DNA of 63,751 bases, filler included, from Pelomyxa schiedti (GCA_020536535.1; 6 parts of 6 records of this genome joined end to end with filler, not necessarily neighbours in it), one strand, 5' to 3'; shown: positions 6,632 to 58,526, numbered from the whole stretch's first letter. Notes: generated from the letters alone by a model not told the origin. Program-made: numbers and translations.

Positions 6632-9600
6632 ATGGATAAAAGTGCAGGCACCACAGCATCACACGATAGCAGGTTGTCAACACACACATCATCTCAACAC
6701 AATACCAATAATCACAAGGCTAACATACACGCATACAGGATTATAGAGGTGAAGAGAGGTAATGGAAGAGGCGGAGGGGGGAAAGTGAGTCGGAAATGGA
6801 GCAGAAGTAGTACAAGATGTAGGGACGCGGTAGGGGGCACGCGTGGGAGAACCGTCGTGATGTCGGTCACGCTCGTGATCGTGACCGCGTTGTGCGTGTG
6901 GCTGGTGTGGTTCGCCGAATCGCGCCATTTCGTGAACCAGCTGACTGGCGTGGCTATGAATGACAAGTCAAACGGTCCGTGAGTGGTTGTGATTGCTATT
7001 GTGATTGTGTTTGGGGTTGTGGGAGTGGGAGTGGGTTGATGTGGGTGTTTGTTTGTTTAAGGGGTTGGCCATGTTGCGTTTTTTTGGTTTTTACTTATTT
7101 TGTTTTGGTTTTTCTTATCCTAACATAGTGGTAATCGAAAGAATTGGGAAATATGTGTCGGTGCGCAGCTACTGCTTCTTTTTTTTTTACCTTTAACTAT
7201 CTTATACTGTGTAAGACCGCACCCGCGGCAATTGAATACCTGTCTATGGAAATGCAGTTTAACTCACATGCTATGTCGACTGACGTGTGGTCTATAATAG
7301 CAAGTTACAACTTCCACGTGAGTTTTGATTGAAACTATTTCTGCTCAGGCATCTTAGATAAACAACTCCCAACTCAAAGTTCTTGTTGTAATTCCAAATA
7401 ATGCTTCAAATTGGGACCCATTACAAGATTCAATGACCTCTGAAGCGGATGTTGTAGGCGCAATTCAAGTACCCAAGATATCTACTTATCATACTCAGAT
7501 ATTTGTTGGCATTCTGACGAACCCTGATTTCACAGTTATTGTGGCAATGAAAGATGGTCTCAACGGTGGAGGGTTGATGTGCATTTCCTATATCACCTCT
7601 CAGTCAAGTTCTGTGCTAACTTACATTGACTGTGGCGACTATCTAGTCAACTGGTCAGTTATAACTGCCCCACCACTCGATAACGGTGGATATCTATTCA
7701 CAGACCCAACAAGGATGACCTTTATGTAAAAAAATCGCTCCCTAAATCCTGTTAAAAAATGAGCAGGGGTTCCCCATGGTTCATGTTTTTTGCTAGTAAA
7801 GTGCGTAGTATTTCCGTCCGCATCCGTATTCATTTCACATCAGATTATATATGACTCTGACCATACTCCAATTGCGTATCTTTTCTGTGGTGTCGACGTA
7901 ATTACGGTACCTTTTTTTGTTTGTTTTATTTGATTTTAATGGCCCGTTTCCAGCTGACGGACTACTTGGCAGAAATAGAAATTCCCGAAAATGGGTTTGG
8001 TTACCTCTTGGATTCCCAAAACAAACTTCTAGCCACCCTTGGACACGCGTCTGTCAATCAATCTGAGCTTGGGTAGAATTCCCTTTCCACGCTTGTGTCC
8101 ATCTGCATCACACTTACCCGGAAATAGAGTGGTCTCTCCAGAGAATTGCTCAAATCCTCGCATTTCCCACAGCTATCAACTAATAAGAAGCAAGATCAAC
8201 TTTAACGATATGCTTCTCAGTCAATCTGAGCACATTACATATAAAGATAGCACTGGGGACAACTTCTTGTATGCGACGTCTTTTAAAAGTATGGCACTCA
8301 CGTTTCCTCTCTTTTTTTATCAGGAAAGGTTACCTAACTTAGAGCCTTCTGATTTTTGTTAAGTGGAAAAATAGTGCTAAGATACCTTCCATCCCCGGAA
8401 AGTAATGTGACATGGACAATTATAATTTCGTTGTCAACCAAGTACTGTGTTGCCCGAATTGTATAAAACAACCAACAGTTGCATCAGTGACTTTACGAAG
8501 ACAGAAAAACTCAGTAATGTTATATCTTTTGCTATTTCTGCCAGTATTGTCATGCTTCTGGTTGTTGTTGGGTTTGTCAACTATGTATCAAATTTTCCCT
8601 TACAATGACAATTCAATCTTACAGGGTTGCGTCGTCATTTAAAATTTCGAAAAAGAATGTGATTAGTCCAGAACCAAAAATAGACTTGGATGCAGGAATA
8701 ATCAAGGTTTGGATACTTTTTGTACTAGACAACCCAAAACTCATCAAGTTCGAAAGGTGATTGACAAACTGCATCAACTTCAAGAGCAGAGTTCCTCAAA
8801 AACCAGGGACACACTGGACGAGATTATATTGCAGCTTACACAAACTAAAGGACTTTTTTCGCCCGAACTGCGCAAGCAAACCGCATATCTTGATGCTGAC
8901 ATACAGCAGTGGTGGGGTTTATCTCTAATTTGCAGTTGAGTCTCATGACTACTCAGGCTAAATGATGAAATAGCACCTACCCAAGAATTTTCTCCCCGTA
9001 CTGTTCAGCTGAGACAGCCGACCCCCTTGGACGCAGGTGAAATTATATCCATATCTGTGGAAGCTTTAGACCCACGTTCCCATCTTGGGGACTTCAACTT
9101 TAATGTTTCCTCACTTCGCAAAATACTATCCTCTCAACCGCACTCATGAAGATATTTGACTTGCCTTCAGACAGAATATTGGAAAGAATAGCTATGCAGG
9201 TACTCAATTGTTTTCTTTCTCGTTTCCACCAATATCAACCAAAGGTACTAAACGAGTTGGATGTGCTTACAGTACTCTCTATTCCTGTGAAATCCATGCA
9301 GAGCTTCATTCGAGAGATTGAGTCCCTGTACAAGGTAAATAATTTCTTTAGCCCCCCCAACTTACATATTTCTTTCCAGCCCAATGCATATCATAACAAG
9401 TACTTCACTTTCGAGGCAATAACTGACTTAGAACAAATTCTCCCATTAATCATAGTGTCCATGCAGCCGACGTTGTACAGTGCCTCTATTTTTTCTTGGT
9501 GAATGGGCTGCGAGATCTTATTGGCCCCTCTAACCCGTTGACTATTCTGGCACTCATACTTGCCGGAGTCGTGCATGATGTGGGACATCCAGGAGTGAAT

Positions 9601-41844: not shown

Positions 41845-42648
41845 TGGTGGAATGTTGCAGTGGCCATCTCAGGATATCAGAACCCCAACCAGCATAATCC
41901 TCTCATCAAAGATGACACAACCCCGGTCTGGGAGATAGAAACTCTGAATAAGCATCTCCCATGCCCTATCTTCTCCCACAGACATCTATAGGCATATGCA
42001 AAAAGCACCCAATTAAGCCTTTGCACCATGACTACAACACCGTCAGCAACCACTGGCAAGACTTAATAAGGGACCTCCACACCCCAGGCATCCCCCCCTC
42101 AATCTGGGACCAAGCCCTCTTGGTTGTAACCAACATGAAACCCCTTAACAATCACATGGCCCATGTATGCAAAGTTGCTCTGACTTGCCGGCATGGATGT
42201 GATTCACTGGAGACAGTAAAACACATCCTTAACAGGTGCCAACATAATTCGGAACTCTGGCAGAAACTGAACCCAATGAAGACCCTCAACATAATTCCGA
42301 ACTCCCCAGACTCAGCCAAATCTGCAGCCAAAACCATCATAGGGCTATATAATTTCCACACCTCAACACTCCCATGGGAACTAGCGCGTGTGGAAGTCTG
42401 TGGGGCACTGGGTTTACCAACCCAGGCCAAATTCCAAACAACCACCATCATTCACCCAAGATTTGAATACAATCCACCTTAAAGGCTTCATGCATTTAAT
42501 AAATGCCCAGTTGTGTGGGCTTACCCCCAATTGTAGCAAAAACCAACCTCAAACCGAACAAATAATCTTAATTTCTTTTCCCTCTGGCTTTGGCACCCTC
42601 TGGAACCACCACACGACCAGCCACTACGAAGAGTTCCTTTACCGCTAA
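41845..42648 (+). mobile_element. 3' remnant of a non-LTR retrotransposon (zf-RVT zinc-binding region)
   Basis: CRHGCDSLETVKHILNRCQHNSELW matches the C-x-C-ET-x2-H-x4-C-W motif downstream of LINE RT; A/C-rich strand bias; stops and frameshifts; no RT motif in window. Confidence 0.6.
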
Positions 42649-43092
42649 AAATAGACCTTTTTTTCGCATCTGGAACTAGCTTAGAACTTAGAGATTAAAC
42701 TTAGATATTTAGACTTTTAGTGACTGTTCTATTGGATAGATGTCTTTCCGGTGTGTGATTCTGTAGAATACACAAGCAAACTCTCTGTGAGCACGAGCAC
42801 AAACACCGAGACTGAGAGACTGACCTGCTGAGTCAGCACTCGGACCTGACATCTTAGGAAATCAAGTTCGTGGAAATCTACCTAGTCCTTATAAGCCCAA
42901 CACACTCCAACCTTAGAATCGCGACCCAAACCTCATAAATCAAAACAAACAACAAACAGAACAAATAATAGAATCCTTTCTTGATCTCGTTCTTGTTCTC
43001 TGCTTTCTCGTCACACACTGAACTACACATCCCCACAGAAGCACACACCGGACACTTCTAAGAGTTTTTTTGCCCCCAGTGGGCAATGGATA

Positions 43093-43325
43093 TCTCTTTG
43101 AGTCCGGGTGCATAATTTGCCCGATAAGGCAATTTCGATTTTTTGCAACAACAGCAAGGACTTGGGTGCCCCAACAGGGGCCCTCGGGTGTTACTTGACA
43201 ACCCCATGAACACAGCCCCACACCCGCGGGCAAGCAGGTCCTGTTGAGGAGATCTCAAAAAAAAAATTCCAAAAAATCTCTCAGTCTTTTTTACCGGTAA
43301 AATTATGCACCCGGACTCAAAGAGA
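43093..43325. mobile_element. 233-bp MITE with TA target duplication
   Basis: TIR TCTCTTTGAGTCCGGGTGCATAATTT (43093-43118) and AAATTATGCACCCGGACTCAAAGAGA (43300-43325), each flanked by TA; no coding capacity. Confidence 0.85.
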
Positions 43326-43715
43326 TATAGTGTTTAATTAATTAAAGACGCCTTCCTTTTTGAAAGGGTACTCCCGGATTACCAAGAAACACAACAGTGC
43401 TGTCTCAGAACCCACATCCAGAGGGAGACCCAAATCACACCCAAACAGCTCTGAGACAGTTAAAGATTTGTTTGTATTCCGGAATTTTTCCGGAAAAAAA
43501 AAAGTCAAAGAGGAGTGATGGGCTTCTGATGTTTGGCCAACTAATTATGGCCAACTCACAGACACCAGCAAACCGACCCACCTTATAAACCCCCTCTGTA
43601 TCGTGGAAATAGTTAAGACCAAGTTGTGTGATAAACATTCTAACACCCATGAGGACAACAACACTATGCCGCCCACAACATCCCTCACCATTTTTTCATT
43701 ACCAACACCAAGGAT

Positions 43716-45337
43716 TCAAGGAAAACAGAAGGCATACTCAAGCTCATTGCATGGTGTCGATGGGAGAGTGACACGGAACGCAATGAACCCTGTGAGTGGT
43801 TCCATCACTATAACTTCATTGCCGTCAAGGGAAAACAAAAGCCCTGAATCCACTTCGATGTGGTGAAGTGCTTGTTGAACTCTGGCAAGTGGCCCTGTCA
43901 ATCCGTTGCAGTCCCAGATGTCACACAGAAAGTTTTTGCCTCTGGGAAAATGCGTAACAGCAAACAGATGTGAAGTCAATCGTGACACTCTCTTTGCGTT
44001 CATTGTTTGGGGCAGAACCACCACCTGGGAGTTTGCGGCAGAACCACCACTCTCTAAAAACTGGATGCAGTGAAACCTGTAACTGATCACCGCCTTGGCA
44101 AAGAAACTCCTTGAACAGGCTCCATACAGCAGAATAACGGAATAGCTCAGGATGTAACACCTGTGTACTTCCACAAAGTGCACGAACTCAGTGCACCAAA
44201 CTAGTTCCGCGAAGGAAAGTAGAACGAACACCAACCCAGCCTCGGCTTCTGTGTGGACACTGATGTGCCCACTGGGGTTTTGGACTCTCACAAGAGGCCC
44301 CGTCAATTCGTTGCAGTCCCAGATGTCACACAGCCAATTTCTGGTGTCGGTCACAACAGCAAACAGATGTGAACTCAATCGGTAGACTGTCTTCACATTC
44401 TTTGTTTGTGGCAGAAATATCACTTTGGGGTTGTCTTCTGAGAACTGGACACAATAAGGTGTTGTCCCCAGCCTGGCTATCCCAATGAAACACCTGGAGG
44501 ACGCTCTTTGCAGTAGAATAATGGAGTGGCCCACAATGTAACCTCCTTTATCCAACTTGATGCTTGTTTCACTCAACACACATTACCTGAGAACTGAATG
44601 ACCGCTCAACATCAATCACCAAAAACACACATTTCTCTGGCATCCTGCAATCCTTCACTGCAACAACAAGTTCATTCACCACCAACTTGTTGAAGAAGAT
44701 CGAGCGGTACTTTGTTACCGCTGGCAGAGTAACCAATCCTTACAGCAACAGATGTGACACCAGGCTTCCTGTCAGCCAGCCTCCCAATTGAGACTCTCAG
44801 CCTGTTTCCTTCCCACTCATCGCTTTCATGTCCACTCGCCACAAACCACTCGCGATTCACCGCGTGCACAAGAACGTGTTCCGACGGCATGATGCTCCTC
44901 GGAAAGACTGCCACCTCTTCGCCAGTGACCAAGTCATGGAGCTCATAGCGGGGCAGCAGGCGCCTCCTGTTGTCAACCCACTCTGATGCACGCGCATTTC
45001 TCCAACGCTGCGATGCCCATGCATCAGTTGTGAGGGCGGGATCACCGAGGATTCCCAGAACAAGTGGTGACACATCGAACTTGAGCAGCAAGTAAAGATA
45101 ACGTGAAGGAATGCAGGGCCCGACGGCGAACTGTCGGCGAGTTTGCTTGACCAGCTCCCACACCAACCTCACCGCGTTTATTGACTCTGACGATGATGAC
45201 GACGCGAGTTGATTGTGGGACGAGGAGGAACGAGACCAACCGCACCTTGGGTGCGACACAAAGCACAGCGAAACAAATTGGTCGACGGCTCGGAGTGTCC
45301 CATAAGACCATGGTACTGGTTCGTTCGGTGTCGTCAT
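43716..45337 (-). pseudogene. Array family copy 1 (subtype A): two frameshifts and a duplicated C-terminal block
   Basis: GTLRAVDQFVSLCFVSHPRCGW start; frameshifts near 44705 and 44580; two successive SSHLFAV...CDIWDCN blocks. Confidence 0.8.
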
Positions 45338-45591
45338 CGTAGTTTCAAACCGGCGTGGACTTATGAGAAAACTGGACTTCAAAAAGATCTTGGCCCCCTG
45401 GCTTGAGCCAGCAGGAAGCAAATTCAAAGGGGGGGTACAAGCGCTTATCGATTCTGTTGGACTTTTTCTCCGAACCGGGAATGATCAGAGTAGGAGAAGT
45501 GGTGTACGAAGGGCTGTGGAAAGGTGTTTTAGAATTCTTTCAAAAATCACCCTCAAAGTGACCATAGTTCCTTAGTCACTTTAAAAGGGAA

Positions 45592-46854
45592 TCAAGGAAA
45601 ACAGAAAGGATGAGCAAGTTCATAGGGGTGCCCTTTAGAAGAAGGGAGAGTGACACTGAGAACAGTGCAGCCTGTGAGTGGTTCCACCACCATCAATTGG
45701 TCATTCCCAAGGGAAAACACCAACCCAGCCTCGGCTTCTGTGTGGAGACTGATGTGCCCACTGGGTGTCTGAACTCTCACAAGGGGCCCCGTCAATTCGT
45801 TGCAGTCCCAGATGTCACACAGCCAATTTCTGTCGGTCACAACAGCAAACAGATGTGAACTCAATTGGGAGACTGTCTTCACGTTCTGTGTATGTGGCAG
45901 AACTATCACCTTGGGGTTGTCTTCCGAAAACTGGACACAATAAGGTGTTGTCCCCAGCATGGCTATACCTATGCCAATGAAACACCTGCAACCGGCTTTT
46001 CTGTACATCAAAATGCTCCAGAGGTCCCCTTCTTCCAACTCCACGCTCGTTTCACTCAACACACACAATGACTGGGAACTGAATGACCTCTCAACATCAA
46101 TCACCACAAACACATATTTCTCGTCTTCCCAGCGATTCCTCACCACAGCAACAACCTCATTCACTGCCGACTTGTCGAATAAAACCCAATTCACTTCGTG
46201 AGTCACAGCAGGGTAATCAAGCCTGACAACAACAGAGGTGGCACCAGGATCCCTGTCCGCCAGCCTCCCAATTGACACTCCCAGCATCTTCTCTTCCCAT
46301 AAATCGCTCTCAAATCCACTCGCCACAAACCACAGCTGATTCACCGCGTGCACAAGCTTGCTTCCCGATCTCTGCGGTGGCATGGGCATGACTCCCGGGA
46401 ACAGTGACACCTCATCGCCAGTGACCGAGTCATACAGCAGAAACGGTGGCCTCAGGCGTCTCGTGCAGTCAACCCACTCGACTGCTGGTGCCTCGAGCCC
46501 ACCCTTTGCTCTCCAAGCATCACGTGTTACAACGGGATCACCAATGATTCCCATAACGAGTGGTGACACCTCGAACTTGATCAGCAAGTAGATACCTTGA
46601 GGGAGGCTATAAGGCCCGACTGCAAACCGTCGTCGAGTGTCCGCGACCAACTCCCACACCAACCTCACTGCATTAATTGCCTCAGAGGGCGATGGTGGTG
46701 CAATTTGATTGTGGGACGATGACGAACTCGCGGGGGACGGATACCAACCGCACCTTGGGTGCGACACAAAGCACAGGGCAACAAATTGGTCGATGGCTCG
46801 AAGTGTCCCATGAGCCCGCAGTGTTGGTTCTTTCCTTTTCGATGGTGTTGTCAT
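45592..46854 (-). CDS. Array family copy 2 (subtype A), intronless, 420 aa
   Basis: GTLRAIDQFVALCFVSHPRCGW ... FEVSPLVMG ... AVNQLWF ... VIDVERS ... CDIWDCN ... EPLTG ... HPFCFP. Confidence 0.85.
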   Translation of the reverse strand: MTTPSKRKEPTLRAHGTLRAIDQFVALCFVSHPRCGWYPSPASSSSSHNQIAPPSPSEAINAVRLVWELVADTRRRFAVGPYSLPQGIYLLIKFEVSPLVMGIIGDPVVTRDAWRAKGGLEAPAVEWVDCTRRLRPPFLLYDSVTGDEVSLFPGVMPMPPQRSGSKLVHAVNQLWFVASGFESDLWEEKMLGVSIGRLADRDPGATSVVVRLDYPAVTHEVNWVLFDKSAVNEVVAVVRNRWEDEKYVFVVIDVERSFSSQSLCVLSETSVELEEGDLWSILMYRKAGCRCFIGIGIAMLGTTPYCVQFSEDNPKVIVLPHTQNVKTVSQLSSHLFAVVTDRNWLCDIWDCNELTGPLVRVQTPSGHISLHTEAEAGLVFSLGNDQLMVVEPLTGCTVLSVTLPSSKGHPYELAHPFCFP

Positions 46855-48360
46855 GGGGTCAACCCAAAGGAGAAAGTAATACAGTGGGAAACTCTTGAAA
46901 GTGATTTACTTTTTTTAAGAAGTGAGAGACCGATGTTGTTGTTAGCATCGATGTACCCCCAGGGCCTTGGAACGAGAAGGTTCGGATGGAAGTTGGGACT
47001 CCCAACTTGTTATGGTCAGTGAAATTGATGAGAAAACCGTTACAACGAAAAAACAACAAGGATGAGTCGCCAGCCGCGGCACCAATGTGGCCTGGTAGCT
47101 CGTCACTTTTTTTTGGTGTCCTATTACCCATAAGTACCGAGACATCGATGTGTTGAGCGAGTAGTTGTCACACCAACAGCCGTGTGTGTTGGTTCCTTAG
47201 TTCTGATTGATTCTTGCCACCATCGCAAGACAGACGTCCGACACTAGTGGCCAAACAAACAACAAGGAACCAACACGCAAACGCTCATGACAGCATAATC
47301 CAGTGGCACCGAAAAGCCCACGACTTGTGGGATGTACCCCCAGTACGTGCCACCACAACTGCATCACGGCCCACCATCATCCAAACGAAATTTTTCCGCG
47401 CACTTCTCCTGGCATCGTCGTTTTTGCATTTGGATCTGACATTTGGACCTTGTAGATCTGCCACTTGGAGACTCCGAGATCTGCAACTACAACACTGGCT
47501 CACTGTAGTTCCTCAGTCATAGTGCCAAATAACCACTGCATAAGTGCAGTTGCATTCTCCCCACGAAATTTCTTGGCATTTTAACCCTTCATAATTAACC
47601 AACTTTCATTTTTTTAAACAAACAGAGACACGGCAGATCTACCGTGACAAGTACACCGTCATAACCACAAGGTTGTCGTTTTTTTCAAAGTGGACGTGTT
47701 TTATCCATCCACATCTCCGCAAAACAATACGCACGTTCACAACTCGCAGTTTATTTCCACCCTTTTACGAATTGAATGCTCTTTCTAACCACTCTCAGAT
47801 ACCCACCCCCCACTGCTGCAACGCTGAGACTTCTGGCGCTATTACTATACTCTATTGGGGCTAGGCAGGCTGCTTGCTATATTATGGAGTTGGCGAAGGG
47901 CCTAGATTGCTGCGGTTTGGTGTAAAAAGCCAAACCGTGGCTGTATTGTGCCCTTTCTCCACAGGACCGGCTGACAGCGGCGCTATTGGGAGGCAACACA
48001 GCACAGCGAGCTAGCTTCTTGCTTGGTTGGGATCATCATCATCATTCACGGCATGCATGCATGCATCAGGGGTCAACAACCACTCAACAACCAACAACAA
48101 GTTCAACGGGGACTCTTCTTCTCTTGCAGCTTGATCTCACTCATGACCTGGGAAAGTGTCTGTGATCCTTCTACTAGTGGTGCAAAAAAATTTTTTTCGG
48201 AACCGTTCGTTTTGTTGCTTAAGTGGGGGAAACGAGCACATGTGACAATGTGACACGTTTTTGTGGAGTTTTTTTGACCCGTGCGTTGTGCTGTCGGCTC
48301 AGTTTGAATGTTATGCCTCAAACCGCAATTTTGTTTGGAACGAAACAACAACTGGGGGTG

Positions 48361-50567
48361 ATGGACAGACGGTGCGTGGAGGGTTCATCGTTATCGTCAT
48401 CGCGTGAGCACCAGCATGTGCCCCAGCAGTTTACCGGCAACACCCAAAGCACGCGGCCTGCTCCGCCGCCAACCGCAACCACATACGCAACCGCAACCGC
48501 AACTGCAACGACGACGTGCACAACCACTACAACTCCGCCGCCGCCGCCATCAAATGAGGAGGGGGGGGGACCCTGGAATTCAGAATCATGGGTGTACCGA
48601 TGGAGGTGGAGTGCAAGGTGATATGGAAGGCACTCACACAGAGGATGGGAAAAAAACCACGCAGAATGTACTTGTGTTTTACTGTTTTATGTTGTTGTTA
48701 TTATTATATTCTGAAACTTGTTCCCTTTTTGTAACTCCAATTAATCTTGAGGAACACATGTACTATGTCTGTCAAGAAGGGTAAGCGGTACCTACAGTTC
48801 CACAAAGCGGGGTCTGTTGCTGTTGCAAGTGTTACTGGGCACCCATTGACTATAAGAGACAAAGATGGAAAAACCTACACAATGTGGTTGAAGCCAAAAT
48901 GCAAACAGCAAACACCAAGTAAAATTGGTTCAAAGGTGCCCAAAACAACCCTTGGACCACAACAGCAACCAACAGCCCAGCTACCGCCACCGGCACTGCA
49001 ACCACAACCACAACCACTGCAGAAGCAAATGCAAACCCAACAACACCAAAGAGATCAGAATATACAAGGACAACAGCAGCAAATTCAAATGCAAGTGCAA
49101 CCACAAAATCTATCCCAACAGCTTCAGGATTTGTACCGAGACTTGTGGATACAACCAGAGTCACTACCTAATCCCCATGGCAGAGGTTTCTTAGGGGCGG
49201 GTGCATATTCTACAGTGTATACTGGTGAGTACAAAGTGTGACTTAAGTTCATGGCTCCTTACTCTTTTTTAGAATCGCTTGGAGTAACAAATGTGGCAGT
49301 CAAAGAGCACAAAGAAGTGGCCGACTTCATACAAGAAATCAGTATTTTAAGGCACTTCCCGTGTAGTTCCTTTCATCATTTAGTTGACTCAATTCTAGAA
49401 TGTTGCGTCACCCCAATATTGTGTTACTGATGGGTACCCATCTTCGTCATTGACACGAAGTTAACCTCAAAACAGGCTGCTCAGTCAGTGGCGATGGCCA
49501 TGCACTTCTTGTTATGGAGCGCATGGATACTAACCTGGACCTTTTAATCCACCAGCCCTGGAGCGTCCCAGAGGAGATGCGAGGGAGCATGCTACTCCGC
49601 CGAAAACTTGATATTGCTCTTCAAGTGGTATGGACCCTCCTTCTTTCCTCTTCATTTACCCATTTCACCACAGGTATCTGGCCTTGATCACACTCACAGG
49701 AGCGATATTGTTCAGAGGTTTATATAACATATCATTGGGCATTTCATGCAATTAAACAACTCTCATCAGAGATTTAAAACCGGCTAATATTCTTCTCGAT
49801 AGGAAAGGGAATGTCAAGGTTTTTTACCTTTTAATTGATTTAACAAACAAAAAAAACAGGTTTCTGGCTGGGGTTGTTCATGCAGCTTGGCCAATGGTCC
49901 TGTGGCATCGAATCCCAACATTGGAACATGTTTGTCTCGGCTCACTCTTTCTCCTTTGAGCAATAATGCAAACTATCTCTTAGGGCAATACATGCCCCCG
50001 GAAAATTACGGCTCCGCACTTGTTTCAAAAGCGTACGATATGTGAGACCTCCTTTAATTCTTCCTCCCTTCACCTTTTTCCAGATACTCTCTTGGATTAA
50101 TTCTGTGGGAGTTGTACACTGAAATGGAGTTGTGGTCTATGAAGGTGGTGCGGGAAAGAATGAGCAAGATCCCTCCAGACGCGCCGGAAGCTAAAATGAC
50201 ACCTCAAGAAGTGCTATTGATGATGATTGTATGTGAAGAATACCGGCCAAACATCCCGGACCTTATGCCCCACAAGCGGGATCCCACACAGGCCGAGCAA
50301 GTGACCCCCCCAGCGTTGGTACCGTCCCTCTTTCTTCACTACAAAACAGAGTTTCTTACCAAACAATTAGAGAGAACTCATCACACTCTGCTGGGCTGCT
50401 GACCCAATCAAGGTACGTTCTTAAGATAATAATTAATAATTTTATAGATAATAAATAATAAATATAATAATTAAACGCCGGCGATCATTTCAATCTCATC
50501 AAAACAGAGGCTCTCCATTTCTGAAGTCAATTTGCGACTCAAGGCTATCATCGCTGATCTGCCATGA
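48361..50567 (+). CDS. TKL-like protein kinase fold with degenerate catalytic motifs (probable pseudokinase), multi-exon; start approximate
   Basis: FLGAGAYSTVY, VAVKE, LRHPNIV, QRDLKPANILL, VSGWG in place of DFG, YMPPE, YSLGLILWEL; Gln-rich N-terminal region. Confidence 0.8.
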
Positions 50568-50677
50568 TTACCCTTTGCTTGTGACAATAGAAGAGACCCA
50601 AAGAAATTTGGTTTTTGTTTAGAACTAAGACTTAAGTTTCGAAAATCAAATCTTGTTTAAAATAGGTCGGTACAACA

Positions 50678-52057
50678 TCAGGGACAACAGAACGGGTGAC
50701 CAACTTCGTAGAGCAGTGCTGGAGGCATGGTCACCCGAAGTATCATGCACCCCGTGAGTGGTTCCTTGACAGTAAGCTCATTTCCTTGCAGGAAAAACAA
50801 AAACCCAGAATCTGCTTCTGCGTGGTACCAGGGCACAACATCCCGTTGTTGTTGAGCTCCAGGAACAACACTCACAAGAGGCTTGGTCATGTCATTGCAA
50901 TCCCAGATGCCACACCACTTGTCATTATACGAAACAGCAAAGAGTGATGCACTCAATTGTGAAATATCTGCACAGCTTTGTGTTTGTGGGATAGCCACTG
51001 GAGTGGTACCATTCTCTGGGAACTCAAAGCAACAGGAAGCAAAAGGTGACAGAATCGCCCCTTTCTGAATGAAGCTCCGGGAACCATCCCTTTTGGTCAC
51101 AACAACGGCGTTTTCCGTGAGGAATGCGCCAGAGTGAACACAAAGTGTGTTCGTTTCAACTATCGCACACAATGACTTGGAGCTGAAGCTCTTCTCAACG
51201 TCCACAACCACGAAAGCAGAGTTCAACGGTGCACTTTGTTGGGACACAATCACAACGAGCTCATTTGGTGATGACTTGTTGAAGAAAAGCGCCGCTACCT
51301 TGTTGCCATCGGACGGGTATTTCAGCTTGACACCAACACTTGTGTCAGCAGGCAGTGGGTCCCCCAGTTTCGCGATCCCGATCCCCAAGGATCCCGAGAA
51401 GTCACACGGCTTCCCAGCCACCGCAAACCACTTGTGGTTCACAGCCAGAGGCAACGAGAAAAACCCCCCAAGCCTTTCCAGCAGAAACGGCGGGACCACA
51501 GGCACATACTGACCAGTGACCAGGTCGTGCAGCATGAAGTTTGGCATCAGCCGCCGGGTTTCTCCAACCCAGCGAGTGACCCCGTGGAAAGAGCAGCTGG
51601 CCGCATCGGCCCCCAGTGGATCGGGAACGACGGTCGGCCCGTCGGTCGTTCCCATAACCAGCGGTGACACCCCGAACGACGCGATCCACGACTGGTGCCT
51701 CGTTGGTTCGTTTTCGTGGTGATCGCCATCATCTCCACCGCCACCTTTCTCGTTGGCGACGAGCCCGCCGAAGCCAATCACGAACCGGCGGCGGGTCTCC
51801 ATTACCATCTCCCACACAACCCTGGCCGCACCTGCACAACTACAACTTGCGCCAACCGCGGTTGTCGTACTTGTCTCGTGCGTGTGAGGATGGCCATTCC
51901 GTTGTTGTTGTTGTTGTTGTGATGGGAGCAACGACGGGAGCCGCGACCAACCGCACCTTGGGTGCCAACCGAGGCACAGCGCAACGAATTGGTCGACAGC
52001 TCGAAGTGTCCCATAAGCCCGCGGTACTGGCCGCGGCAAACCCCCCGTTGTAGTCAT
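50678..52057 (-). CDS. Array family copy 3 (subtype B), intronless, 459 aa
   Basis: GTLRAVDQFVALCLGWHPRCGW, FGVSPLVMG, FFNKSSPNELVV, IWDCN, GHPFCCP. Confidence 0.85.
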   Translation of the reverse strand: MTTTGGLPRPVPRAYGTLRAVDQFVALCLGWHPRCGWSRLPSLLPSQQQQQQRNGHPHTHETSTTTAVGASCSCAGAARVVWEMVMETRRRFVIGFGGLVANEKGGGGDDGDHHENEPTRHQSWIASFGVSPLVMGTTDGPTVVPDPLGADAASCSFHGVTRWVGETRRLMPNFMLHDLVTGQYVPVVPPFLLERLGGFFSLPLAVNHKWFAVAGKPCDFSGSLGIGIAKLGDPLPADTSVGVKLKYPSDGNKVAALFFNKSSPNELVVIVSQQSAPLNSAFVVVDVEKSFSSKSLCAIVETNTLCVHSGAFLTENAVVVTKRDGSRSFIQKGAILSPFASCCFEFPENGTTPVAIPQTQSCADISQLSASLFAVSYNDKWCGIWDCNDMTKPLVSVVPGAQQQRDVVPWYHAEADSGFLFFLQGNELTVKEPLTGCMILRVTMPPALLYEVGHPFCCP

Positions 52058-52207
52058 CAGTTTTTAACGAATTGTACGTCTTCCGTGAATGTGATGACTT
52101 CGTTACTTTGGTCAAGACAACTCAGACGATGAGGAACTGCCTCCTCTGGAGGATGTGTTCTAACTTGCGAGAATAGAAACAATTAAGGTAATTGGAATTG
52201 AAGAAGA

Positions 52208-53602
52208 TCAGGGAAAACAGCAGAAGGGGTGACCAACATCATAAATACGATCCAAAGGGAGAGTGACGTGGAGTACAGTGAACCCTGAGAGTGGTTCAAT
52301 CACTCTCAATTCATTGCCCTCAAGGGAAAACAACATGCCAGCCTCTGCTTCAGCGTTAACGCACTGATTCCTGGATTGCGATTGAGTTGCAGGAACACTG
52401 ACAAGAGGCTTGGTCGAGTCGTTGCAATCCCAGATGTCACACAGCTTGTTGCCCGAGGAAAATGAAACAGCGAAGAGTGATGAACTCAACTGTGATACCT
52501 TTGTAACATTCTCTGTTTGTGGGAGGGCGACTGCTGTGGAGCAGTTCTCTGGAAACTCAATGCAATGATATCGGAAGTGCGACATCACACCTTTCTCAAC
52601 GAAGCTCCTGGAGCCATCTCTCTTGGTCACAACAACGGCGTTCATTGTGAGGTAGGACGAGGATTCAACAACCACTGGGGCCATTTCACTCAACACAGAC
52701 AATGACTTGGAACTGAATGTCATTTCAGCATCAATCACCAAAAACGCAGAATTTTTATGTGCAGTCCGCTTGTGTAGCACCACAACCAGCTCGTTTGGTG
52801 ATGACTTGTTGAAAAAAAGCACCTTGAAATTGAAGTTTTCAGAAGAGTGGTTGAGCTTCACACCAACACAAGTGTCAGCTGGCTGTGGGTCTCCAACTTT
52901 CGAAATCAGTATCTCTAAAACACCTCCTTCAGCTCTTGAATTACTGGCAGCAAACCACTTGTGATTCACAGTACACCCTAGAGAGTTTCCATCAAGTCGA
53001 CCCTGGAGCACCAATGGCACATATTCGCCAGTGACCAGGTCATGCAGCCTGTAATTTCGCTCGAGGCGCCTCATGCTGCCCACCCACTGGAAGTTGATTG
53101 ATGCATCATAGCCAAGTGGATCAGGCATGACCGTTGGATCATCAGTGATTCCGAGAACAAGTGGTGACACACCAAACGACACAATCCAGTGGCTGGTTTT
53201 TTCGGACCCCCTTGGGTCAGCAATTTGTACAGCAACCACAAACCTGCGCCGAGTGTCCATGACCATGTCCCACACAATCCTGGGGGTGATTAAACAACAA
53301 CATTCGTTGGACAACCGAGAGGAAGAAGAAGCAGAACTGTTCTGTGCAGTTGCACATGTGTCACTTTGGCCCGTGTAATTTCTCTGAAGGCCCATGGGGG
53401 TGGCATCTGCCGACATTTGATTCAACGTTGTCTTTGACATCAATGGATCTGGTTGTTGTGGTGCCGAGGGCGAGGGCGAGGACGACGATGACCGATACCA
53501 ACCGCACCTTGGGTGTGCAACAATGCACAAGGCGACGAATTGGTCAATGGCGCGAAGTGTCCCATAAGCCCGCGGCGGAGGTGCAGGTGCGTACGCCGCC
53601 AT
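52208..53602 (-). CDS. Array family copy 4 (subtype B), intronless, 464 aa
   Basis: Same motif series; closest to copy 6. Confidence 0.85.
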   Translation of the reverse strand: MAAYAPAPPPRAYGTLRAIDQFVALCIVAHPRCGWYRSSSSSPSPSAPQQPDPLMSKTTLNQMSADATPMGLQRNYTGQSDTCATAQNSSASSSSRLSNECCCLITPRIVWDMVMDTRRRFVVAVQIADPRGSEKTSHWIVSFGVSPLVLGITDDPTVMPDPLGYDASINFQWVGSMRRLERNYRLHDLVTGEYVPLVLQGRLDGNSLGCTVNHKWFAASNSRAEGGVLEILISKVGDPQPADTCVGVKLNHSSENFNFKVLFFNKSSPNELVVVLHKRTAHKNSAFLVIDAEMTFSSKSLSVLSEMAPVVVESSSYLTMNAVVVTKRDGSRSFVEKGVMSHFRYHCIEFPENCSTAVALPQTENVTKVSQLSSSLFAVSFSSGNKLCDIWDCNDSTKPLVSVPATQSQSRNQCVNAEAEAGMLFSLEGNELRVIEPLSGFTVLHVTLPLDRIYDVGHPFCCFP

Positions 53603-53713
53603 CGGAGCTGTTGGTGATGGGGATTTTTTTTCGCGAAGGTGATCGATTGTGATGGGGGGTCAAAGAAAGGCATTGGGCAACATAGTTTTGAAAGAGGATT
53701 TTAATTTATTTTA

Positions 53714-54966
53714 TCAATGAAAACAGAAGGGAGTGCCAAGTTCGTACTTCTGATCCCTTAAAGGGAGAGTGACATTGAGAGCAATGAACCTTGTGAGTGG
53801 TTCCATCACTATCAATTGATTCCCCTCAATGGAAAACACAAGCCCTGCCTCTGCCTCAGCGGGGCCTCTGATGTCACTTGTAACTCGCACGAGTGGCCCT
53901 GTCAACTTGTTGCAGTCCCAGATGTCACATGCACCCCCGCTTCCAAGACTCATATAAACAGCAAACAGATGTGAACTCAGTCGCGCCACTCTATACACAT
54001 CAGTCGTTTGTGGCAGTACAACCACCTGGGGGTTATTCTCTGTAAACTGGATGCAGTGGCCATGGCGAGCTGGCGAGTGGCCTATGCCAATGAAACACCT
54101 GCAACCTGCTCTGTACATCAAAGAGATTGTAAACGCCCAGAGGGTCCATCCTGTCTGCAACTCAACACTTGTTTCACTCAACACACACAACGACTGGGAA
54201 CTGAATGACTTCTCAACATCAATCACCACAAACACATGTTTCTCATGTGCCTTCCGATTACTCACCACAGCAACAACCTCATTCACTGCCGACTTGTTGA
54301 ACAAAACCCTCTCTACCCAGCAAGTCACGGCCGGGTAACCAAGCCTGACAACAACAGACGTGGCTCCAGGGTCCTTGTCCAGGAGCCTTCCAATTGACAT
54401 CCCCAGCATGTTTCTCCCCTCCGGATCGCTTTCAAACCAACTTGCCACAAACCACACGTGGTTCACAGCGTGTCGAGGATGGCCTCCTCCTGATGGCAGT
54501 GCCCTCGGATACAGTGACACCTCTTCGCCGGTGACCACGTCATACAGCGCGCAAGGCGGCACCAGGCGCCTGGTGTTGTCCCCCACTCCAACTCCACTGG
54601 GATGAGACGGAACTTGGCTCTCATCTCATCAGTTGCGATCGCAGCAGGGTGACCAGCAACACCAAGGATCCCCAGAACAAGTGGCGACACCTCGAACTTG
54701 ATAAGCCAGTACATGGAACAGCTGAAGCAAGAAGGCCCGACGGCAAAGAGTCGACGTGTGTCTCTGACCAGTTCCCACACCAACCTCACCGCGTTTATTG
54801 CCTCCGACGATGGCGATGTGATCTGATTGTGGGACGATGAAGACGAGGAGGAGGGCCGATACCAACCGCACCTTGGGTGAGAAACAAGGCACAGGGCAAT
54901 AAATTGGTCGATGGCTCGGAGTGCCCCATGAGCCCGCGGCATTGTTGGTCCTTTCAGTGCTGCCAT
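53714..54966 (-). pseudogene. Array family copy 5 (subtype A), single frameshift
   Basis: N-part ORF 54463-54966 and C-part ORF 53714-54586 join at LEW(x)DNTRRL; shift at the C5 run 54580-54584. Confidence 0.8.
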
Positions 54967-55158
54967 CGTTTTACTGTAAATCGCGCACTGTTCTGATCCG
55001 TGTGATCTGAGCTCTTTCGAAAATAATCAGCAGCATTTTCGACGTACATGATGATGAACACCTCTGGGTGACAAGATACGGTTCCACAGTTCTGCATTAA
55101 TGAATTTCGATAACGAAAACAAAGCCAGGTGTGATATTTAAATGTTAGGTGAAAGACA

Positions 55159-56508
55159 TCAGGGAAACCAGCAGAAGGGGTGACCAATACCAGAGATCCA
55201 AAAAGGGAGAGTGACACTCAGCACAGTGCACCCTGTGAGGGGTTCTAGCACTCTAAATTCATTGCCCTCAGGTGCGAACAACATTCCCGCCTCGGCTTCA
55301 AAGTAGCTCATTCTGTCTCTGGTGTGTGGGGGCTGTTTTGCGGGAACACTGACAAGAGGCTTGGTCAAATCGTTGCAATCCCAGATGTCGTACAGCTTGT
55401 TACCTGAGGAAAACGAAACAACAAACAGTGATGAACTCAATTGTGACACTATACTCTTCCCATCCGAGTTTGGGAGGGCAACTGCTCTGGAGCCGTTCTC
55501 TGGAAACTCAATGCAACACCATTCACGGAGTGCTGCAATTGCACCCCTCTCAATGAAGCTCTTGGAGCCATCTCTCTTGGTCACAGCAATGGCAGTCATT
55601 CCGAGGAGGATCGAGGATTCAACAACCACTGGGGCCATTTCACTCAACACACACAATGACTTGGAGTTGAATGTGACCTCAGCATCAATCACCAAAAACG
55701 CAGAATTTGGCTGTGTGTTTCGCTTGGATAAGATCACAACGAGCTCATTTGGTGAAGACTTGTTGAAGAAAAGCGCCCTTATGTGGTAGTTTTCGGAAGA
55801 GTGGTTGAGCTTCACACCAACACAAGTGTCAGCTGGCTGCGGGTCTCCAACTTTCGAAATCAGGATCTCCAAAACACCTCCTTCATCTCTTCGTCTTGGG
55901 GCTGCAAACCACTTGGGATTCACAGCATACCGTAGAGGCACCTCACCATCAACTCGATCCAGAAACGCCAATGGCACATATTCACCGGTGACCAAGTCAT
56001 GCAGCCTGTAATTTCCCTCGAGGCGCCTCGTGCTGCCCACCCACTGGAAATTGATCGACGCAGCGGAGTCAAGTGGATCAGGCATGACCGTTGGCATTTC
56101 AGTGATACTGAGAACAAGCGGTGACATACCAAATGACACATTCCAGTGACTGCCAGGACCATACACAGTAATCACAAACCTGCGCCGAGTGTCCATGACC
56201 ATGTCCCACACAATCCTGGGGATGATGACGCAACAACATTCATTGGCCAAAGAAGAACAAGAATAATTGCTCTGTGCAGTGGCAGTTGCACATGTGTCAT
56301 TTCTCTGGAGGACCATGGGAGCTGCTGCGGATATTTGATTTGATGGAACCATCAATGGATCTGATTGTTGTGGTGTTGGTTCCCGGAACGACGACGAGTA
56401 CGACGACCGATTCCAACCGCACCTTGGGTGCGAGACGAGGCACAAGGAGACGAATTGGTCGATGGTGCGGAGTGTCCCATAAGCCCGTGCAGGTGCGTAC
56501 GCCCTCAT
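55159..56508 (-). CDS. Array family copy 6 (subtype B), intronless, 449 aa
   Basis: Same motif series; shares EGGVLEILISKVGDPQPADTCVGVKLNHSSEN with copy 4. Confidence 0.85.
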   Translation of the reverse strand: MRAYAPARAYGTLRTIDQFVSLCLVSHPRCGWNRSSYSSSFREPTPQQSDPLMVPSNQISAAAPMVLQRNDTCATATAQSNYSCSSLANECCCVIIPRIVWDMVMDTRRRFVITVYGPGSHWNVSFGMSPLVLSITEMPTVMPDPLDSAASINFQWVGSTRRLEGNYRLHDLVTGEYVPLAFLDRVDGEVPLRYAVNPKWFAAPRRRDEGGVLEILISKVGDPQPADTCVGVKLNHSSENYHIRALFFNKSSPNELVVILSKRNTQPNSAFLVIDAEVTFNSKSLCVLSEMAPVVVESSILLGMTAIAVTKRDGSKSFIERGAIAALREWCCIEFPENGSRAVALPNSDGKSIVSQLSSSLFVVSFSSGNKLYDIWDCNDLTKPLVSVPAKQPPHTRDRMSYFEAEAGMLFAPEGNEFRVLEPLTGCTVLSVTLPFWISGIGHPFCWFP

Positions 56509-57024
56509 CAGAAACGTGTGGTTGAAATTCTGTGAAAGTGATCCAAATCACTTTCTTTTTTCTTTATCCGAAACAGCGGAAACGGCACCAGGTTCAAAGA
56601 ATACGGTCCACCAAGGGATGAGGAGTGCCAACATGCATAACCAAGAAAAAAGGGGTAAACAAGTGGACTTGGGGATTTGCCAACAGCAAAGGAAGCCGAG
56701 TTGCCAGTGATTTCTTGAGTGAGTCCAAAGTTCCATTTTTTTTCTTCTTCAACTGGGGGTTGGTGTTGTAGATTTGGCAAATCAACACTCTTGTGTGTAC
56801 TTTTCAAGGAAAACAGAAGACCTGGCCAAGGACATAGAGCCGTACTTCAGGGAGAGTGACATGGAGCACAGTGAACCTTGTGAGTGGTTCNNNNNNNNNN
56901 NNNNNNNNNNNNNNNNNNNNNNNNNNNNNNNNNNNNNNNNNNNNNNNNNNNNNNNNNNNNNNNNNNNNNNNNNNNNNNNNNNNNNNNNNNAGATTTGGCA
57001 AATCAACACTCTTGTGTGTACTTT

Positions 57025-58290
57025 TCAAGGAAAACAGAAGACCTGGCCAAGGACATAGAGCCGTACTTCAGGGAGAGTGACATGGAGCACAGTGAACCTT
57101 GTGAGTGGTTCTATCACTCTAAATTCATTCCCCTCAACAGAGAACAAAAACCCTGAAGCTGCCTCTGCTGACTGTAAACTGATGTCACTTGTAACTCTCA
57201 CAAGTGGCCCTGTCAATTCTTTGCAGTCCCAGATGTCACATGCAACCTTGTAAGTGAATCCAGCACGCAGAAAAGAAACAGCAAACAGATGTGAACTCAA
57301 TTTTGACACTGAGCGCATATCACTTGTTTGTGGCAGAACAACGACCTTGGGGTTGTCCTCTGAAAACTGGATGCAGTAATTTCTGTAAGTTGACGACATC
57401 GCTCTCCCAATGAAACACCTGCAACCGGCTCTGTCCATCAAAATGAGTGAATTGCTCTGGACGTACAATTCTCTCTCCAACTCAATGCTTGTTTCAGATA
57501 ACACACACAATGACTGGGAACTGAATGACTTCTCAACATCGATCACCACAAACACGTATTTCTCATCATTTTCCACGCGACTCTTCACCACAGCAACAAC
57601 CTCATCCACTACCGACTTGTCAAAGAAAACCCAATCCGTTTTGTGACTCACAGCAGAGTAGCCAAGCCTGAAAACAACAGAGGTGGCACCAGGATCCTTG
57701 TCCGCCAGCCTCCCAATTGATATCCCCAGCATCTTTCCTTCCCGTAAATCACTTTCGAACTCGCCTGCCACAAACCACACGTGATTCACCGCATGCACAG
57801 GAACGATTCTTGTTGTGGGTGGTTGCTCTGGCATACCCCTTGGAAACAGTGACACTTCATCGCCAGTTGCTAAGTCACACAGCATAAAAGGTGGCACCAA
57901 GCGCCTCGTGTTGTCAATCCACTCCAATTCTGGGGCCTTGAGTCTGAACTTGAGTCTCAGCTCATCGAATGTGACCACAACATCACCAAGGATTCCCATG
58001 ACAAGTGGTGACACATCAAACTTGATCAGCCAGTAAACTGAGCTGCCGAAGTCATAAGGCCCGACGGCGAACTGTCGGCGCGTATCCTTGACCATTTCCC
58101 ACACCAACTTCACTGCGTTAATTGCCTCTGACGATGGTGATGCGATTTGATTGTGGGACGATGACGTCGACGACGAAGAGGACGGATACCAACCGCACCT
58201 TGGGTGAGACACAAAGCACAGGGCAACAAATTGGTCGATGGCTCGAAGTGTCCCATGAGCCCGTGGCGTTGGTCCGTCAGGTGTCGTCAT
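57025..58290 (-). CDS. Array family copy 7 (subtype A), intronless
   Basis: MTTPDGPTPRAHGTLRAIDQFVALCFVSHPRCGW ... QVFCFP. Confidence 0.85.
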   Translation of the reverse strand: MTTPDGPTPRAHGTLRAIDQFVALCFVSHPRCGWYPSSSSSTSSSHNQIASPSSEAINAVKLVWEMVKDTRRQFAVGPYDFGSSVYWLIKFDVSPLVMGILGDVVVTFDELRLKFRLKAPELEWIDNTRRLVPPFMLCDLATGDEVSLFPRGMPEQPPTTRIVPVHAVNHVWFVAGEFESDLREGKMLGISIGRLADKDPGATSVVFRLGYSAVSHKTDWVFFDKSVVDEVVAVVKSRVENDEKYVFVVIDVEKSFSSQSLCVLSETSIELERELYVQSNSLILMDRAGCRCFIGRAMSSTYRNYCIQFSEDNPKVVVLPQTSDMRSVSKLSSHLFAVSFLRAGFTYKVACDIWDCKELTGPLVRVTSDISLQSAEAASGFLFSVEGNEFRVIEPLTRFTVLHVTLPEVRLYVLGQVFCFP

Positions 58291-58526
58291 GTGGTCAACC
58301 GTGCTGATTTTGCTCTTGTTGTTTTGGTAATTTTCCTTCAATCAGTTCGGTGAAGGAAAAGCAGGGTGTGAGCTTTTGAAAAGGGATGGATGGAGGAGTA
58401 GGTGTAGTTTTGGTTTGTGGATGTTGNNNNNNNNNNNNNNNNNNNNNNNNNNNNNNNNNNNNNNNNNNNNTTAATTAATTAANNNNNNNNNNNNNNNNNN
58501 NNNNNNNNNNNNNNNNNNNNNNNNNN

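Follow-up and report, generated by a model that had tools for sequence, protein, structure and literature searches.

The anaerobic amoeba Pelomyxa schiedti carries a large family of intronless genes whose products join a short, strongly conserved N-terminal box built around the motif HPRCG (the N-box) to a beta-propeller body. We studied the family through a tandem array of seven copies at 43716-58290 of the window, the whole 63,751-nucleotide (nt) stretch of assembly GCA_020536535.1 analysed here, and through members elsewhere in that assembly. Duplication, both in tandem and to dispersed sites, has multiplied a constant, constrained N-box and a propeller with variable loops about 300-fold in this one lineage, and copies have occasionally decayed. 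The reading we favour, to which we assign a probability of roughly 45%, takes the members to be exchangeable subunits of a putative receptor repertoire: each would dock on one putative common partner through its N-box, possibly aided by the conserved last two blades, and would bind a ligand of its own through the variable propeller loops.

To gauge how large and how widespread the family is, we searched 1.84 billion representative proteins (clusters at 50% identity) with a profile built from eight members. At E ≤ 0.001 the profile matched 284 representatives, of which 164 reached E ≤ 1e-10 and 17 reached E ≤ 1e-30. Since each representative stands for a cluster at 50% identity, the diversity is at least this large, although some of the matches are fragments or merged gene models. 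The family thus corresponds to about 1.4% of the proteins predicted for P. schiedti, which number 19,876 (PMC8887013). Source tracing covered the best 150 of the 284 matches: all 20 sampled representatives, including the ten weakest among those 150, came from P. schiedti, as did all 12 named matches of word-index protein searches, making 32 of 32 traced. A word-index search with the N-box alone returned only the query, and pattern scans of 185,579 prokaryote genomes, JGI metagenomes and IMG/VR found no relatives outside P. schiedti. To judge from these searches, the family is so far found only in this species. All traced members but one are annotated as hypothetical proteins, the exception, P0147, being named after a fused phosphodiesterase domain, and we did not find the family described in the literature on the motif or on Pelomyxa propellers. 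The fold is ordinary; what is new is the family, its N-box and its scale.

The array lies on a piece (41845-58426) that is a complete 16,582-bp P. schiedti contig. Open reading frame (ORF) listing and tblastn with intact copies located exactly seven family members on it, all on the minus strand and arranged head to tail. Five of them are uninterrupted Met-to-stop ORFs of 420-464 codons, alignable with their paralogues over the full length: c1 (57025-58290, 421 amino acids (aa) from its ATG, corresponding to P0001), c2 (55159-56508, 449 aa), c4 (52208-53602, 464 aa), c5 (50678-52057, 459 aa) and c6 (45592-46854, 420 aa, the protein used for modelling). Copy c3 (53714-54966) is divided between two overlapping ORFs, 54463-54966 and 53714-54586, and c7 (43716-45337) is degraded, with at least two frameshifts. 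Spacers between adjacent copies measure about 110-300 nt, except that c5 and c6 are 3.8 kb apart, with a gene on the opposite strand between them. Other members, placed on the same assembly, stand singly or in pairs among ordinary genes, and those examined are likewise continuous, intronless ORFs; the family members are real nuclear genes. An initial annotation made from the sequence alone had described seven tandem copies of a massively expanded family, intronless in an intron-dense genome. The copy number, the 284 representatives and the continuous ORFs in a genome averaging 7.43 introns per gene (PMC8887013) bear out all three points, and every motif it had listed (RAxDQFxAL..HPRCG, RxVW, SPxxxG, VNxxW, FNKxxxNE, VIDxxxS, IWDCN, GxxF and EPxxG) is present in the alignments.

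The architecture was examined with an AlphaFold2 model of c6 built on an alignment of 60 diverse members, which reached a mean predicted local distance difference test score (pLDDT) of 88.2 and a predicted template modelling score (pTM) of 0.87 and superseded a shallower, poor run with 8 sequences (pLDDT 61). In this model the N-box occupies residues 12-72 (46639-46821, minus strand) and consists of a strand at 13-16, a helix at 20-31 (IDQFVALCFVS), the HPRCG turn followed by a Ser-rich, low-confidence linker, and a second helix at 56-72 containing ..VRLVWELV..; both helices have pLDDT of about 91-95. The propeller spans residues 75-420 (45595-46632, minus strand) with about 26 strands and the IWDC motif at 348-351. 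The model has about 27 strands in all, where a seven-bladed propeller would have about 28, in seven four-stranded sheets. A structure search with VIA-align returned only beta-propellers, mostly seven-bladed, at Z 15.6-17.9 over about 260-310 residues, among them an S9 peptidase propeller, methylamine and aromatic amine dehydrogenases, BtuG, RbBP5 and many WD40 proteins; the list is flat, and no single propeller family stands out. The body is accordingly modelled as a seven-bladed beta-propeller, the blade count and the predicted position of the box on it both being read from the strand list and the structural matches. Searches of the ESM atlas gave no usable match by features, for the N-box and one whole member, and only template modelling (TM) scores below 0.5 by shape, for the shallow 8-sequence model. 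The helical N-terminal box and the beta-propeller body expected from sequence both appear in the model; given the strand that precedes the first helix, the box may not be a freely separable module. The proteins, of about 400-460 aa, have no strong hydrophobic segment and no obvious signal sequence in any copy, the lone hydrophobic stretch near the N-terminus being the conserved box helix, and we infer a cytosolic location.

The N-box comprises about 45-60 residues and runs straight into the propeller. Its consensus over 84 boxes, picked with a pattern fixing H, R, C and G, reads L-[RT]-A-R-D-Q-[FL]-x-A-L-x3-[ST]-H-P-R-C-G-A-x-S-P-A-R, followed after about 8-12 (up to about 25) residues by L-W. 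In an unpatterned alignment of 60 members Q, L, R, C, G and W were at least 90% conserved, and in an alignment of 40 boxes R, C and G were invariant with Q, L, H and W at 90% or more; H and Q are present in at least 90-95% of boxes. The first N-box helix has the lowest mean entropy of all elements of the protein (1.80 bits), and 6 of the 15 invariant or nearly invariant columns fall within the box. The C-terminal blades are also conserved, together with the box. The loop after HPRCG, which carries the Ser-rich insertion in the subfamily of the window, accommodates insertions of up to tens of residues.

Selection acts unevenly along these proteins. Pairwise Nei-Gojobori estimates, which carry no statistical test, gave ratios of nonsynonymous to synonymous divergence (dN/dS) of 0.31-0.60 for whole genes, 0.13-0.24 for the N-box, 0.13-0.50 for its second helix and 0.29-0.50 for the propeller. 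In 15-codon windows, the proportion of nonsynonymous differences (pN) reached about 0.9-1.3 times the gene-wide synonymous proportion (pS) at c6 residues 153-167 and 298-312 in four of four pairs, at 110-122 and 271-282 in three of the four, and at 364-376 in two. All five of these fast windows are loop regions, and three of them (153-167, 271-282 and 364-376) have insertions or deletions among the window copies; nearly frozen, by comparison, are the N-box and motifs around residues 198-212, 257-270 and 353-363. These sequence comparisons indicate that purifying selection acts on the coding sequence, most strongly in the N-box, and that some propeller loops change at about the silent-site rate. 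The box is therefore more constrained than the body, as had been proposed; the accompanying description of the body as variable applies to the fast loops and not uniformly, given the conserved C-terminal blades.

The same observations bear on the main alternative, in which the N-box is an integral part of the propeller, either a cap that closes it or a Cys/His active or metal site, and the members are stand-alone binders or enzymes with no common adaptor partner. The strand at 13-16 before the first helix suggests that the box may be threaded into the closure of the propeller instead of forming a docking module, and the confidently modelled helices hold a fixed predicted position on it. The invariant R-C-G with the nearly invariant His and Gln could be a catalytic or metal site, the C-terminal blades are conserved along with the box, and the top structural matches include the enzyme propellers of S9 peptidases and amine dehydrogenases. 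Those matches, however, do not stand out from the generic propellers around them; large insertions are tolerated in the loop after HPRCG (71 extra alignment columns), the box His is replaced by Asn in P0076, and about 300 paralogues with hypervariable loops are rarely needed by an enzyme family. We consider a box of this integral kind unlikely, if still worth serious weight.

Much less probable, in our view very improbable, is that the family represents a selfish element, such as a transposon or integrated virus, or decaying retrocopies with no cellular function. Intronless genes in a genome with this many introns, the high copy number and the one degraded copy in the array would fit such an origin, as would a 173-aa ORF at the edge of the array (41961-42482, plus strand), which has a weak, sub-threshold match (E 0.069) to zf-RVT, a reverse-transcriptase zinc-binding region, and may be a retroelement remnant. 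Yet no member contains a transposase, integrase or reverse-transcriptase domain, the contig has no inverted repeats, its direct repeats are confined to coding parts, and IMG/VR holds no relatives. The upstream regions of the copies could not be aligned and a shared promoter motif was not found in them, so that only the proteins are being conserved, with coding dN/dS well below 1; members elsewhere stand alone among ordinary genes. In addition, RNA-seq contigs from three single-cell runs cover parts of c2 (55513-56516), c4 (52223-52490) and c5 (50742-51386) at 99-100% identity and unspliced, and none was found on c3 in those runs. These data consist of contigs alone, come from the study that produced the genome and allow for DNA carry-over; they suggest that c2, c4 and c5 are transcribed.

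The family was next compared with named families, and the initial annotation's statement that it contains no recognisable domain proved correct: Pfam found no family domain in the window copies and no F-box, SOCS-box, BTB, LisH or WD40 match at E ≤ 1 in 60 members, and searches of the PDB with a whole-protein profile and an N-box profile returned no solved chain. WD40 (PF00400) was absent from all 60, apart from a single weak match to Prp19 WD40 (E 0.096), and in place of the WDxR (DWD) box of DCAF proteins the family has a conserved [ILV]-W-D-C-N without the Arg. For a SOCS or BC box, there was no Pfam SOCS_box match and no LPxP-type Cul-box was seen, the box is N-terminal, and the last position of the consensus is the invariant Cys. 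An F-box is a three-helix bundle; the model of c6, a member with the Ser-rich linker, shows two helices, a low-complexity loop and a preceding strand. The KIB1-4/DUF295 propeller (PF03478, Beta-prop_KIB1-4) was matched by residues 147-250 of P0092 at 18.7 bits (E 0.0014), below the 27.4-bit gathering score, and by none of the other 59 members; we treat this match as a lead only.

A genuine F-box is available for comparison in the same genome. A canonical F-box gene (7223-7897 of L005, plus strand; ..LDLPLDVLSHIVGYLSPKSVFAARAVCLQFW..) lies 104 nt upstream of P0076 (8001-9182) on the same strand and has weak precomputed matches to PF00646 and PF12937. It is probably a chance neighbour of P0076, and its presence shows that F-boxes of the usual kind, distinct from the N-box, also occur in P. 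schiedti. Aligned by hhalign with this F-box (7266-7499), the N-box gave a probability of 0.4%. It nevertheless deserves consideration whether the N-box is a true, very divergent F-box, which would make the members Skp1-binding receptors of SCF (Skp1-cullin-F-box) ligases with an architecture homologous to plant F-box/DUF295 (KIB1-4) proteins. The size (about 45 aa) and N-terminal position are the same, in members with short linkers a hydrophobic helix is followed by a loop with Pro and then by a second helical part that ends in L-W (compare ...V-C-x-x-W in F-boxes), the hhalign register is the one expected of an F-box, though without significance, and P0092 provides the PF03478 match. Set against this are the hhalign probability itself, the missing L-P start, the lack of any F-box or F-box-like Pfam match at E ≤ 1 in 60 members while the neighbouring canonical F-box does have weak matches, and the fact that the PF03478 match, itself below threshold, is confined to one of the 60, with about 0.08 such matches expected by chance over that many scans. 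We judge true F-box ancestry improbable.

What the evidence supports in the proposed adaptor box with a variable binder is the design, a constrained box joined to a propeller with fast loops; none of these comparisons identifies the box as an F-box or SOCS box. In the common-partner reading, the most likely kind of receptor would be a substrate receptor of a cullin-RING-type ubiquitin ligase, like the F-box, DCAF or BTB propeller proteins, with a box unrecognisable as any of these. Receptors of cullin-RING ligases (F-box, DCAF, BTB and SOCS-box) are the best-known example of such a design and form large, fast-evolving, often intron-poor families. By this analogy a role in ubiquitin ligation is tenable within the common-partner reading, but tentative and on the doubtful side. 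More speculative, and distinctly unlikely as a whole, is a broader version in which the HPRCG N-box would be an unrecognised adaptor for a new class of cullin-RING or other effector receptors, and the roughly 300 propellers a Pelomyxa-only repertoire for intracellular recognition, possibly policing the obligate bacterial and archaeal endosymbionts or invading microbes. A part in immunity or symbiont control, as the initial annotation suggested, is conjectural, if possible in view of the biology of Pelomyxa (PMC10579272).

Several points weigh against the common-partner reading. Among them are those raised above for an integral box, namely the strand before the first helix and the potential catalytic or metal site. 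The docking partner of the N-box is putative, proposed by analogy with known receptors, and the empty Pfam scans for F-box, SOCS-box, BTB, LisH and WD40, the failure of the N-box profile to find a solved chain and the hhalign result with a genuine F-box each tell against a known adaptor. Distant relatives elsewhere are possible among the 134 weaker matches of the profile search. Finally, the contrast in constraint between box and loops comes from simple pairwise estimates, and the evidence of transcription from RNA contigs with the limits given above.

In a phylogenetic tree, the window copies fell into two well-supported clades, A (c1, c3 and c6) and B (c2, c4 and c5), both within one subfamily, and the other sampled members were about 1.7-2.8 changes per site away, which indicates that the family as a whole is old and diverse and the array a local outgrowth. 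Copy c7 was too broken to be placed; its tblastn pieces are closest to c6 (60-76%), and we assigned it to clade A. Along the array the copies then run A-B-A-B-B, a kinase-like gene on the other strand, and A-A. This alternation, together with the similar silent divergence of c1 and c3 (pS 0.33) and of c2 and c4 (pS 0.29), fits duplication of a two-gene unit; the array has grown by local duplication. With one copy decayed, the family evolves by birth and death.

The interruptions in the array are of different kinds. A run of 100 Ns at 56891-56990 lies outside any gene, 3' of c1; it begins 34 nt downstream of the c1 stop codon and is crossed by no reading frame. Its flanks, 56770-56890 and 56991-57111, are 121 nt long, 100% identical and in the same orientation, the left-hand duplicate consisting of the final 87 nt of the c1 frame, stop codon included, and 34 nt of 3' flank. 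Because the flanks are identical direct copies, the gap (56770-57111 with its duplicates) is a scaffolding artefact in which two overlapping contig ends were joined with Ns; nothing need be missing, and the spacer between c1 and c2 is probably about 295 nt and not 516 nt. Copy c3 is broken in this assembly by a single 1-nt frameshift near 54581. A DNA contig from another run of the same study (X4) has one extra base there, which restores an uninterrupted ORF of 417 codons (417 aa); in at least some genomes, then, c3 is probably whole, and the frameshift reflects either an assembly error or an allele. Contigs of the X4 run differ by 1-2% from the window at 51264-52358 and 54266-54700, with insertions or deletions at 52058 and 54581, differences that could be allelic variation, near-identical paralogues or single-cell amplification errors. 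Copy c7, on the other hand, shows genuine decay: it is broken up over three frames (45337-44708, 44724-44575 and 44582-44220), and these pieces are followed by a second, in-frame partial copy of the C-terminal ~140 residues (44144-43719). A tract of about 260 nt in c7 (44227-44487) is 92-95% identical to c6 (45716-45973), compared with 60-78% for the remainder, which suggests gene conversion between the two.

Several other features of these loci were recorded. The gene between c5 and c6 (48747-50402, plus strand) is a multi-exon, kinase-like gene that contrasts with the intronless family around it: one ORF (48747-49241) is Gln-rich in part and closes with GAGAYSTVY, resembling a kinase glycine loop, and the next (49251-49430) contains VAVKEHK, similar to kinase subdomain II. 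A Pfam scan of this gene, exon ORF by exon ORF, gave no result, the single exon ORFs being too short, and an Rfam scan of the array contig found nothing. On L001 (contig JAHLWZ010000343.1), several adjacent genes have Sel1 repeats and protein-kinase domains; both recur at other loci, and these genes may be another expanded family in P. schiedti.

Public gene models merge family copies with each other or with unrelated kinase, Sel1 and phosphodiesterase genes, as in P0006, P0009, P0064, P0065 and P0147. For example, P0006 (Pelo_16540) combines the tail of c3 with c4, and P0009 consists of two tandem ORFs on L002. Pfam scans of eight long matches found only unrelated domains (kinase, Sel1, phosphodiesterases and Med22); a recurrent multidomain architecture was considered for these long matches and ruled out, since they are merged models. 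Counts of the family taken from GenBank gene models will therefore be distorted.

A single orphan family accounts for roughly 1.4% of the proteins predicted for an amoeba whose way of life is an obligate consortium with bacteria and a methanogen. Should the box serve for docking, it would add a new motif to the adaptors of modular receptors, with a logic comparable to that of the F-box, BTB, SOCS-box and DCAF H-box, and the family another independent case of birth-and-death receptor evolution. If the box is only structural, the family is a large but ordinary lineage-specific propeller expansion.

Four known systems resemble the Pelomyxa family in some respects. For the SOCS-box or BC-box receptors of Elongin BC, whose BC-box follows the pattern [APST]-L-x3-[CSA]-x3-[AILV], the likeness is partial: the first Pelomyxa helix has A-L-x3-[S/T/A], but the last position of the pattern is Cys instead of an aliphatic residue, there is no Cul-box, and SOCS boxes are normally C-terminal. 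The paralogous BTB/POZ and WD-repeat proteins of giant viruses (mimivirus and moumouvirus) were the best structural matches in a viral library (TM 0.44-0.49) and share with the Pelomyxa family an adaptor-plus-propeller design, multiple copies and an association with amoebae. Their BTB domain of about 100 residues is absent from the Pelomyxa proteins, however, and with no sequence similarity and no relatives in IMG/VR the likeness is one of design, with no evidence of kinship. The DCAF receptors of CUL4-DDB1 ligases have a similar layout and combine an H-box helix-loop-helix with a seven-bladed WD40 propeller; a W-D dipeptide also ends a strand in the Pelomyxa model (IWDC), and DCAF5 was matched at Z 15.3 in an alignment that begins at model residue 22. 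The Pelomyxa motif is nevertheless W-D-C-N instead of WDxR, Pfam finds no WD40 repeat, DCAF5 does not rank above about 50 other propellers, and a similarity to DCAF17 in the ESM atlas (0.82) is within the chance range. The last comparison is with the F-box propeller receptors, namely F-box/WD40, F-box/Kelch and plant F-box/DUF295 (KIB1-4) proteins. The Pelomyxa family differs from them in having no Pfam F-box match, no L-P start, its own invariant H-P-R-C-G loop and a strand before the first helix. Both groups nonetheless join a short N-terminal helical box to a propeller of about 350 residues in proteins of similar size, plant DUF295 genes too are largely intronless, and both form very large, lineage-specific tandem families that evolve by birth and death with the box more conserved than the body.

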